The translations under genes and the position numbers were made by a program. From assembly GCA_002269645.1 (NCBI GenBank), contig NIVC01002103.1, positions 1-62,083 on the forward strand: DNA of 62,083 nt, in the 5' to 3' direction. The notes under the pieces were generated by a model. It did no database searches, was not told where the DNA came from, and saw nothing but the letters and a program-made list of their open reading frames with translations. Source of the stretch: Macrostomum lignano. Lineage: Eukaryota. Of this stretch, positions 18,401 to 21,400 are shown in pieces; positions within the stretch are counted from its first letter, which is position 1; the number at the start of each line of letters is the position of its first letter.

Positions 18401-21400
18401 CAACCCATTCTATTCCTTCATCAGTGTATATTGGCTAGGTTAGCAATCCATTCTATTCCTGCATCAGTGTATATTGGCTAGGTTAGCAATCCATTCTATC
18501 CCTGCATCAGTGTGTATTGGCTGGATTAGCAATCCATTCTATCCCTGCATCAGTGTGTATTGGCTAGATTAGCAATCCATTCTATTCCTTCATCAGTGTG
18601 TATTGGCTAGATTAGCAATCCAGTCCACTTATTAAATCAGACTCGTTAAAAGTAAAACAATTTTTTTCAGATAGATAAGGTCTCATTTTTGGTGCGAAAG
18701 ATTTTTTTAAATACAGACAGTCCCGACCCTCCGACCCGATGGTTCGTAAACAGTGACTCACGTGACTCACCCATGATCGCGGGGTTGGGGTTAAAATTTG
18801 TTACCATTTTCTGACCAATTTCCTTTGTTCCGCAATGGAAGCTTGGGGAATGCAAGGCAAGTCATGATATTTCTCTGATCCCTTGACTGACTGAGTCATG
18901 CCACCCAGCATTGGTGGGTCTTTTTCCGGTTACAAAGTTTTACAACTAATAGAGAATAGTATAAGAATATGCAAGTATTAATCATCGCTTGTTATTTTGG
19001 GCAGTTGTGGCAATACTGGTGTGATTCAGTGGGTGACTAGACCAAAAGGCAACAGATATTTTAAGTGTTACAAATTTTACAAGTGGATTTGAAGTTTGGG
19101 ATATGAATCTTGGGGATGTGAATCTTGGGGATGTGAATCTTGGGGATGTGAATCTTGGGGATGTGAATCTTGGGGATGTGAATCTTGGGGATGTGAATCT
19201 TGGGGATGTGAATCTTGGGGATGTGAATCTTGGGGATGTGAATCTTGGGGATGTGAATCTTGGGGATGTGAGTCTTGGGGATGTGAATCTTGGGGATGTG
19301 AATCTTGGGGATGTGAATCTTGGGGATGTGAATCTTGGGGATGTGAATCTTGGGGATGTGAATCTTGGGGATGTGAGTCTTGGGGATGTGAATCTTGGGG
19401 ATGTGAATCTTGGGGATGTGAGTCTTGGGGATGTGAATCTTGGGGATGTGAATCTTGGGGATATAAACCTTGGGGATGTGAATCTTGGGGATGTGAATCT
19501 TGGGGATGTGATCTTGAGGATATAAACCTTGGGGATGTGAATCTTGGGGATATAAACCTTGGGGATGTGAATCTTGGGGATATTAATCTTGGGGATGTGA
19601 ATCTTGGGGATATAAATCTTGGGGATATAAACCTTGGGGATATGAATCTTGGGGATATGAATCTTGGGGAAATAAATCTTGGGGATGTGAATCTTGGGGA
19701 TATAAATCTTGGGGATTTGAATCTTTGGGGATATAAACCTTGGGGATATAAACCTTGGGGATATGAATCTTGGGGAAATAAATCTTGGGGATGTGAATCT
19801 TGGGGATATAAACCTTGGGATATGAATCTTGGGGATGTGAATCTTGGGGATATGAAGCTTGGGGATATGAAGCTTGGGGATATGAATTGGAAGTAGTCAG
19901 CTTGGAGATCTAGAAGTTTTAGGATATAAATCGTGGGGATATGGGATATGGATATGAAGGCGAAGGCTGAAGCTTGGGAATATGATATTTAGGATATGAG
20001 CTTTTCGAATACGAAGTTCGGGGATATAAACTTTAGGAATACTATAAGTTTTTAGTGGGTGTCATTTGTGAAGTCAAGTTCTGACTACTTTAGAGTATTT
20101 ATTTACTATAGCATGTATTATAATAAAATCAGCTAGAATTGATTTTAATGCATGGCGGCATATGACTCACTCGGAGTCGCCTTAGTTTGTCATCGCTGAT
20201 TCGCTTCAGGTCATTTCTTTAGGAATGAGGAAATAAGAGCAAGAATTTGGATCAGTCAGTCGGAGTTCTACTATTGGTTTTAGTCAGCACTCTTAGCTGG
20301 TTCATTCGCATCGTATTGGTTCCGTTTCCTCTCAATTGGGGTGGTAGTCGCTCCGCTGCTAAGCAACGCGGGGATTCCCCGGCCCCCTCTACCCCCCTCT
20401 AGTCCTTTCTTTACTTTCTTATCCTTTCCCTCTCCCGCGTGTGCGGTCTGAGTCAGCGATTCTCCGGTCCGGCAGCCCCGCCAGCCCTCCCCCCGTCACT
20501 TAGAGTGTTTAAGAGTTCCGTTCCTTCTATTAGTGGTCCCCCTTATTTGTCATCATATTGAATTGAATAGCAGGCCTGCCTATCTAGTTCAGCCCGTAAA
20601 CTTCCAATAGTAATTAATTTCTAAATATTAACGAAGATTTGTCGGTTAGTCATACTATATTTAAAATATGCCTTCTTCGCCGCTATCCAAGTCTGCTGCC
20701 AATAATAGAAAATCGTTACCAGCCGATTCAGCATCGGATTTGTCAACGTCATCACGGTCATCCTCATTATTGCCAGCTTCTGCTAAGCGAAATCGGCCAA
20801 GTCGACTGCAATTAGGCTTTGTTGGACTTGGAGGATTAGGAGTAGATTTAGGCTCAAATAATAATAGTACTATTTGTGCTACTAACACTAGTAGTAGTAT
20901 TAGTCCGCTCAGTCCGATATCGCCAAATTGTGCGCTTGTTATTGCTAGGCCTAGAAAGTTGCGATCAATTGGTGAGTTAATATTAGATTTCAAGTTTGTT
21001 TTTAATGTTACAGACGCGTAGGGCCTAGCCCTAAAATTCGTGTCTTGACACTTGACTTTTTTCTGGTCTTAGTCATAGCTTAGCTAAGTAAGTGTAGATG
21101 ACGAGGCCTTGTGTGTTTAATTAAAGAACTGTTTACTCTTGCCGTTTAGCTAGGTAGATAAACCCTCGTAGAAATCCTGGTAGCGTAAAGCTTCTGGATT
21201 ATTATTATTAGCTTAGCTGTTCATAATTGCTTCAAGTGTAATTAACTTGTTTTTTGGTTATAAATAGCACAAGCCATAAGATTGCAGTTTTGCCACTTGT
21301 GTTATCGATAAACTCGTTATCAGTTAAAATGGGGAAGGTCATTATAAAAGCTAACCTGACTAATAATGTTAAAGTTGAAATTTACCTAGCTGGCTCTTCG

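Follow-up and report, generated by a model that had tools for sequence, protein, structure and literature searches.

The flatworm Macrostomum lignano carries, on contig NIVC01002103.1 of GenBank assembly GCA_002269645.1, a gene for a dual-specificity phosphatase (DUSP) of the DUSP8/16 type that may be able to exchange its N-terminal docking module. We analyzed positions 1 to 62,083 of the forward strand of this contig (62,083 nucleotides, hereafter the window). The reading that we favor, with a probability of roughly 60%, is that one catalytic core is combined with three mutually exclusive N-terminal modules: a rhodanese domain, an annotated leader that begins MVLCRK, and an intronic open reading frame (ORF), here called exon N, that would be spliced in phase 1 to the catalytic exon at 23334. 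Judging from its anatomy and its conservation in a paralogue, exon N is probably a genuine coding exon. That it serves as a first exon joined to 23334 appears likely, at a somewhat lower level of confidence. Each of the two leaders that lack the rhodanese domain encodes a short linear motif that matches the JIP1 class of JNK docking motifs.

Exon N, a candidate alternative first coding exon

The intron between the last rhodanese exon and the first catalytic exon spans 5.7 kb (17671-23333), and exon N lies within it on the + strand at 20668-20971. It consists of 101 codons and one base (304 nt). The ATG is at 20668-20670, an in-frame TAA stands two codons 5' of it (20662-20664), and the frame ends at a phase-1 donor, CAATTG/gtgagt (20971/20972; the slash marks the splice boundary), that is compatible with the acceptor aattatttcag/GCGGTT at 23333/23334. 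Joined in this way, 20668-20971, 23334-23696, 23845-23968 and 24064-24661 form an uninterrupted protein of 462 amino acids in which the DSPc domain is intact.

An earlier note on this DNA had described an ATG-initiated exon of 101 codons with a phase-1 donor inside the DUSP intron, in frame with the catalytic exon at 23334 and bypassing the rhodanese domain, and had placed the peptide KRNRPSRLQL at 20785-20814. Direct reading of the sequence and the 462-residue translation agree with all of this, and the match of RPSRLQL to the JIP1-class pattern agrees with the note's view that the exon fits JNK docking motifs of that class. Its interpretation survives in part: the coding character of the exon, the motif class and a rhodanese-less DUSP8/16 isoform are retained as probable, and homology to DUSP10 and an ancestral DUSP8/16/10 arrangement are not, as discussed below.

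Within the intron, exon N is the sole ATG-initiated ORF of at least 40 codons that ends at a phase-1 GTRAGT donor. Composition-preserving (block) shuffles of the intron contain such an ORF of at least 101 codons in 0.3% of cases. A repeat scan and an Rfam search around exon N returned no repeat and no RNA family. A second GenBank copy of the locus (L002, NIVC01001575.1, which encodes BOX15_Mlig006006g1) has 93-98% DNA identity to the window; it differs from exon N at one base, which changes Leu to Pro, and it is too close to the window for any statement on selection.

Conservation of exon N in a diverged paralogue

The M. lignano genome also encodes a diverged paralogue, Mlig009817g1 (P0006), which is ~73% identical to the window gene over part of the catalytic domain and ~38% identical over the leader and first catalytic exon. 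When the exon-N peptide was compared with the paralogue locus (L003) by tblastn, one match was found, at 6947-7177 on the same strand (E=2.5e-5). This match appears only with low-complexity masking off, and hence shuffle and frame controls were applied. The paralogue exon (L003:6944-7160) begins with an ATG, has 217 nt (1 modulo 3, as have the 304 nt of exon N) and ends at the donor AAG/GTAAGC. Its relative position is alike, at ~2.8 kb upstream of the MVLCRK ATG compared with 2.5 kb in the window, and the acceptor tttcag/GC is present at the equivalent place. Over the 10 kb that precede the paralogue gene it is the sole phase-1 ATG-initiated ORF of at least 40 codons, and the best-scoring of 203 ORF segments.

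The similarity is at the level of protein. The Smith-Waterman score of the two peptides is 78, compared with 30 +/- 5.4 for shuffled sequences, none of which scored as high in 10,000 trials (maximum 65 in 5000), and among 36 pairs of reading frames a high score was obtained only for the sense in-frame pair. Two blocks are shared, [S/V]AKRxRPxRLQLxF and SPLSPIS[P/A]N, whose 23 residues include 18 identical ones, 12 of which are encoded by different synonymous codons (for example CGA/AGG, TTA/CTC and AGT/TCC), and GC content differs strongly between exon N and its counterpart (43% vs 73%). The similarity stops exactly at the donor, beyond which the read-through peptides are unrelated. Searched against the 10-kb stretch that precedes the paralogue, the intron as a whole gave no match by blastn or tblastx; low-complexity masking, when on, hides the exon as well. 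Outside exon N the intron shows no alignable DNA similarity. Taken together, this is the pattern that would be expected from purifying selection on a protein-coding exon in the frame of exon N.

Candidate linear docking motifs in two rhodanese-less leaders

The motif of exon N, RPSRLQL (20794-20814, + strand, residues 43-49), conforms to the JIP1-class pattern of docking motifs (D-motifs), [RK]P[^P][^P]L.[LIVMF], and lies inside the conserved block SAKRNRPSRLQLGF. This pattern, that of the ELM entry of DOC_MAPK_JIP1 type, agrees with every example in the supplement of Zeke et al. 2015 (PMC4670726). The block is the best conserved part of exon N between the paralogues: of its 14 residues the paralogue shares 10, 6 of which have different synonymous codons, and its motif reads RPGRLQL. 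Further along the tail is a Ser-Pro cluster, SPLSPISPN (20902-20928, + strand), with candidate sites of phosphorylation by mitogen-activated protein kinases (MAPKs); here 8 of 9 residues are identical to the paralogue, 6 with different codons. The cluster follows the D-motif by 30-37 residues in the window and 17-21 in the paralogue. By analogy with c-Jun, such spacing is typical for phosphorylation by a docked MAPK. A basic stretch, RPRKLRSI (20947-20970, + strand), precedes the splice junction, and the paralogue has RKRRK.

The second leader, MVLCRKFRPERLTF (23156-23333, + strand), starts at an ATG at 23156, is contiguous with the catalytic exon and contains its own JIP1-class match, RPERLTF (23177-23197). 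The annotated protein BOX15_Mlig006006g1 starts at this ATG, from which the frame is open into 23334. The same start is found in transcript contigs that lack introns and come from two further sequencing runs, evidently of related species; P0002/L001 represents the window gene, and P0004/L005 and P0005/L006 (MVLCRKNRPCGLKF) represent the paralogue. The leader is conserved in the paralogue and the transcript contigs as MVLCRK[FN]RPxxLxF, with RPCGLKF as the motif of the paralogue. The 5' untranslated region (UTR) of L005 is colinear with the genomic DNA directly upstream of the MVLCRK ATG; therefore, this leader has its own start site and is not derived from exon N. We accordingly rejected exon N as a 5' UTR exon of the MVLCRK start, given this colinearity and the out-of-frame products of nearby acceptors. 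The gene thus already has at least one proven rhodanese-less form. The earlier note had missed this leader, and its presence strengthens the idea of a docking swap.

Across the two kinds of leader, the JIP1-class pattern occurs once per rhodanese-less leader in every copy examined, and zero times in the 496-amino-acid rhodanese isoform. Shuffling the leaders yields the pattern in 0.5-2.5% of trials.

A DUSP8/16-type gene with upstream rhodanese exons

The catalytic and C-terminal part of the assembled protein is 99% identical to M. lignano BOX15_Mlig006006g1 (P0001), and Pfam recognizes DSPc (1.9e-39) and a rhodanese domain in the window gene. Several comparisons indicate that this is a gene of DUSP8/16 (vhp-1) type and no DUSP10 orthologue. 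In a comparison with solved structures, the bit scores of the catalytic domain are 169 for DUSP16, 167 for DUSP8, 126 for DUSP7 and 117 for DUSP10; the best match is PDB 4YR8, DUSP16/MKP7 with JNK1, and the rhodanese domain matches DUSP16 entries only. The named top database matches to the gene are DUSP8, DUSP16 or vhp-1.

Three exons encode the shared core, all on the + strand. The first (23334-23696) starts the catalytic domain, and its phase-1 acceptor, tttcag/GC, is usable by both rhodanese exon 3 and exon N. The second (23845-23968) carries the active site HCLAGISRS (23880-23906), of HCxxGxxRS type. The last coding exon (24064-24661) contains FNFL (24101-24112), an FXF-type JNK F-site motif of DUSP8/10/16, followed by a Ser/Ala-rich C-terminal tail and the stop codon. 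In alignment A1 the FNF is invariant and the L nearly invariant. The predicted structure of the catalytic fold has a pLDDT (predicted local distance difference test) score of 86-98.

The rhodanese exons lie on the same strand, upstream of exon N, and are intact and phase-compatible with the catalytic exon. Exon 1 (12478-12549, GDQQGALLISPDSLVKLLALNPTK) is internal or trans-spliced, with both ends in phase 0; exon 2 (13542-13652, LLIIDSRS...SRLVKRRLQQGK) holds a basic cluster resembling a kinase-interaction motif (KIM); exon 3 (17448-17670) ends ...RLLQ G/gtgggc in phase 1. They are 40% identical to their paralogue counterparts; none of the latter lie within the 10 kb of L003 that precede the paralogue gene. 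In UniProt, A0A1I8HDA5 (P0121) and A0A1I8J5B3 (P0122), which represent this gene and the paralogue, are separate models, labeled rhodanese domain-containing proteins, that contain the rhodanese exons and end at the exon-3 donor (...RLLQ). The gene thus appears to be split in current annotations, with the GenBank model covering the catalytic part and the rhodanese exons standing apart.

At rhodanese exon 1 (12463-12480) the frame is in phase 0 right after the acceptor ttattgcag, and its ORF has no upstream ATG. The M. lignano spliced leader has an ATG at its end (PMC8629364), and trans-splicing at this exon would therefore create a start codon, giving MGDQQGALLISPDSL....

Sequence elements upstream of exon N

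The 600 bp upstream of exon N (20068-20667) and of its counterpart (L003 6344-6943) have five exact 10-mers in common, namely GGGATTCCCC, CTGAGTCAGC, GCCCTCCCCC, CCCGCCAGCC and TTCTATTAGT (block-shuffle P=0.008); other windows in the two upstream regions have 0-3 in common. Of the five, GGGATTCCCC (20371-20380, + strand) is a candidate promoter element, and CTGAGTCAGC (20448-20457) includes a candidate AP-1/TRE element, cTGAGTCAgc (20449-20455, + strand). These matches hint at an independent promoter for exon N, perhaps an AP-1-responsive one.

AP-1 sites are also in excess in the window as a whole (52 vs 10 expected). By itself this excess is no sign of regulation: most of it comes from one 26-bp minisatellite (7421-8870, 56 copies, unit GAGTCACTGAATGATCAGAGGGATAT) that contributes 39 perfect TGAGTCA sites. 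The array lies ~3.6 kb 5' of the first recognizable rhodanese exon and, being one of ~15 tandem arrays, may be there by coincidence. Within the DUSP gene (15938-25111) there are 9 TGASTCA sites in 9.2 kb, where scaling the whole-window shuffle expectation gives an estimate of ~1.5, and the paralogue locus (L003 1-12000) has 13 in 12 kb. Such density might reflect feedback from JNK to AP-1, as for Drosophila puckered. As an indication of regulation, neither these nine sites nor the one upstream of exon N is more than suggestive.

Alternative docking modules: a model and its rivals

In the model that we propose, the rhodanese/kinase-binding domain (exons 12478-17670) is the first module, exon N would be the second, as an unannotated first coding exon that is probably transcribed from its own promoter, and the annotated MVLCRK leader, transcribed from immediately 5' of the catalytic exon, is the third. 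In human MKP5/DUSP10, the rhodanese domain binds p38 and the linear motif RPQDLNL (residues 19-25) binds JNK (Zeke et al. 2015, PMC4670726). In MKP7/DUSP16, JNK1 is bound by the catalytic domain via FNFL, whereas the kinase-binding domain neither binds JNK1 nor affects JNK1 dephosphorylation and was suggested by the authors to dock p38 (Liu et al. 2016, PMC4802042). If the rhodanese domain of the flatworm protein likewise docks p38 and its FNFL recognizes JNK, an isoform with a JIP1-class motif in place of the rhodanese domain would be JNK-directed. Dropping the rhodanese domain would remove the p38 anchor and keep recognition of the JNK F-site by FNFL, and RPSRLQL or RPERLTF would add a JNK-specific contact in the D-groove. 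The rhodanese-less isoforms would then be JNK-directed phosphatases with two contacts, D-groove and F-site. In exon N, the Ser-Pro cluster would be placed for phosphorylation by the docked kinase, and the tail may double as a regulatory substrate. Promoter choice would set substrate preference.

A wider version of this model is tentative, and we think it rather less likely to be right than wrong. Both Macrostomum DUSP8/16 paralogues may keep three promoter-driven docking modules, with an independently maintained JIP1-class motif in each rhodanese-less leader, so that transcription would decide on MAPK specificity (p38 and JNK, or JNK only). The promoter of exon N might be AP-1-responsive and form a puckered-like JNK feedback loop, and the same logic may underlie the rhodanese-less DUSP8 of vertebrates.

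Several points weigh against the proposal of three alternative modules. MVLCRK is the one start in the gene model of GenBank, and every transcript contig found in the two related species is likewise of MVLCRK type. The exon-N peptide, extended by 17 residues across the junction, had no match, even at E = 10, in a collection of 5.8 billion protein clusters, and none at E <= 0.001 in a full HMMER search of 1.84 billion representatives; these collections evidently under-sample M. lignano transcripts (2 members, from 1 contig, make up the cluster of P0001), which makes absence weak evidence. The conservation of exon N comes from one paralogue pair, to which the near-identical L002 adds no independent information. 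The joining of the rhodanese exons to 23334 is, like that of exon N, something we infer, here from homology and phase. The tail of exon N has no predicted secondary structure (pLDDT 39-57; 24% Ser), and this points weakly to disorder, the alignment used for the prediction having held no homologues of the tail.

Exon N could be real and conserved but used differently: as a cassette or alternative-acceptor exon set between the rhodanese and catalytic parts, as a leader to another acceptor, or as a small stand-alone ORF. Rhodanese exon 3 and exon N both have phase-1 ends, internal xxA/Gxx positions in exon N (ttattgccag/CT just 5' of the motif) could take a rhodanese exon in frame, and the real junctions of exon N are fixed by no transcript. 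However, the TAA two codons 5' of the ATG bars the whole exon as an in-frame cassette, and a reading of the codons indicates that the paralogue exon has no phase-1 internal acceptor before its motif. Use of another acceptor is disfavored by the early stops in the out-of-frame products of those just 5' of the MVLCRK ATG, and a stand-alone ORF by the end of similarity at the donor, with unrelated peptides beyond. In both paralogues the ATG heads the conserved ORF. Overall, we regard a different use as improbable. Distinctly improbable, in our view, is a reading of exon N as unexpressed today, either an ORF formed by chance or a relic without transcription. This explanation would account for why exon N is missing from the annotated model and from every predicted protein searched, and it draws some force from the Ser-rich, low-complexity composition of the exon, from a 110-amino-acid antisense ORF that overlaps it, and from a window full of repeats that produce long ORFs. 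Yet exon N is outside any repeat, so long an ORF is rare in shuffled introns (the 0.3% given above), and ATG, phase and donor are all kept in the paralogue, where conservation is specific to frame and strand across synonymous changes and a 30-point difference in GC content.

The earlier note had proposed a different origin, in which exon N is homologous to the N-terminal region of DUSP10/MKP5 and preserves an ancestral DUSP8/16/10 gene layout. The human DUSP10 motif that it cited is correct, RPQDLNL being validated as a JNK-binding motif of JIP1 type, and this motif is an old one, bilaterian in age according to Table EV3 of Zeke et al. (PMC4670726). DUSP8, DUSP10 and DUSP16 form one subfamily (PMC4802042), and exon N and DUSP10 both start MP(P/S)SPL and both have an RPxxLxL motif. 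Beyond motif class, however, we found no homology between exon N and the DUSP10 N-terminus. Represented by its first 7 residues and by residues 8-37 as given in the supplement of Zeke et al., that N-terminus gives a Smith-Waterman score of 31 with exon N, where shuffles give 23.7 +/- 4.3 and 370 of 5000 do as well or better (p about 0.07); for the paralogue exon 725 of 5000 do so (0.15). The best alignment leaves the two motifs unpaired. MPSSPL, in which the note saw a resemblance to the start of DUSP10, is MRSQQP in the paralogue, and the motif begins at residue 43 in exon N but at residue 19 in DUSP10. The gene is clearly of DUSP8/16 type (169 and 167 vs 117 bits), and the layout of DUSP10 differs, with the motif before the rhodanese domain in one protein. 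The DUSP10 motif is encoded in the same large coding exon as the rhodanese domain; exon N is 3 kb downstream of the last rhodanese exon, its frame closed by a stop 5' of the ATG. D-motifs arise repeatedly and switch class quickly (PMC4670726), and the second, independent JIP1-class motif in the MVLCRK leader shows that such motifs arise easily in this gene. Convergence is much more likely than common descent for the motifs of exon N and DUSP10, and we consider the homology explanation very unlikely.

Other features of the window

The window is crowded with minisatellites. Just downstream of the DUSP gene is a GC-rich island (26600-30360, 54-63% GC vs ~40% around it) whose long ORFs, overlapping on both strands, and a stretch resembling YADNLALLSS suggest a degenerate retroelement of the long interspersed nuclear element (LINE) type; a Pfam search of the island gave no match at E <= 0.01. 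One neighboring gene, at 33227-36735 on the - strand, encodes a C2-domain protein. The other, at 55469-56236 (+ strand), is represented by the N-terminal exon of an alanyl-tRNA synthetase (tRNA-synt_2c, 3e-107), and a 273-bp satellite of ~18 copies with 99% identity occupies 57210-62083, reaching the window end.

Comparison with known systems

MAPK phosphatases (MKPs) are usually described as a fixed pair of rhodanese docking domain and catalytic domain. The locus described here suggests that one DUSP8/16 gene can swap the folded docking domain for linear motifs via the choice of first exon. If true, this would be a simple means of switching one phosphatase between the pathways of p38 and JNK. 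In practical terms, the gene and its paralogue are incompletely annotated, with the rhodanese exons in separate models and exon N absent. JNK signaling is important in flatworm regeneration, and M. lignano is a regeneration and stem-cell model in which RNA interference and transgenesis are available.

Parts of this arrangement are already known, namely a JIP1-type motif in DUSP10 and, in chicken, a rhodanese-less DUSP8 made from the same intron. In the literature we found no description of a leader with a conserved JNK-class docking motif that makes folded and linear docking modules mutually exclusive, nor of two rhodanese-less leaders per DUSP8/16 gene, and no paper turned up for the gene identifier Mlig006006.

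Human DUSP10/MKP5 resembles the putative exon N isoform in being an MKP of the JNK/p38 group with a linear motif of the JIP1 class in an N-terminal region that is, or for exon N may be, disordered, and its division of labor, in which JNK is bound by the motif and p38 by the rhodanese domain, is the one we propose for the flatworm gene. It differs in paralogy group, and its motif stands upstream of the rhodanese domain in one polypeptide, whereas the flatworm modules would be mutually exclusive. DUSP16/MKP7 has FNFL in common with the flatworm protein, and this motif in the catalytic domain explains how a rhodanese-less isoform could still act on JNK. For human MKP7, by contrast, no N-terminal JIP1-type motif is known, and JNK is reportedly reached partly through the JIP1 scaffold.

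The core of the candidate exon N motif, [RK]-P-x-x-L-x-[LF], is also that of JIP1 (RPKRPTTLNL), IRS1 (RPTRLSL) and DOCK5 (RPKSLQL). Motifs of this class often have Ser or Thr before the first hydrophobic position (PMC4670726); exon N has Arg there, as has IRS1 before its first Leu. More distantly, the dual-specificity MAPK phosphatases Msg5 and Sdp1 of yeast also rely on linear motifs near the N-terminus for docking (PMC3898958), although they belong to another lineage and use other motifs, a classical D-motif and IYT.

The closest parallel is vertebrate DUSP8. In chicken, an alternative promoter in the homologous intron gives rise to a rhodanese-less isoform, with support from RNA sequencing (RNA-seq) and CRISPR activation (CRISPRa) (PMC12536144), and predicted DUSP8 X2 isoforms with the same .../GGF junction occur in fish, birds, lamprey, crinoids and a brachiopod. 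The vertebrate X2 isoform is like the flatworm gene in subfamily, intron, junction (.../GGF), loss of the rhodanese domain and retention of the catalytic core. Its leader (MPLDV.IAP.ED.FW...LKIRVRRMKE...) is by eye unlike exon N and has no JIP1-class match. This leader is conserved from fish to bird (P0060, P0072; MPLDV.IAP.ED.FW...LKIRVRR.KE.R..R/GGF), and its basic-hydrophobic stretch might be a docking element. Unlike vertebrate DUSP8, the flatworm genes would each have two rhodanese-less leaders, and the vertebrate isoform is supported by RNA-seq and CRISPRa, whereas exon N is a candidate read from genomic sequence. If the docking swap is real, it would offer a functional rationale for the rhodanese-less DUSP8 isoforms predicted from fish to bird, which are now termed 'atypical'.

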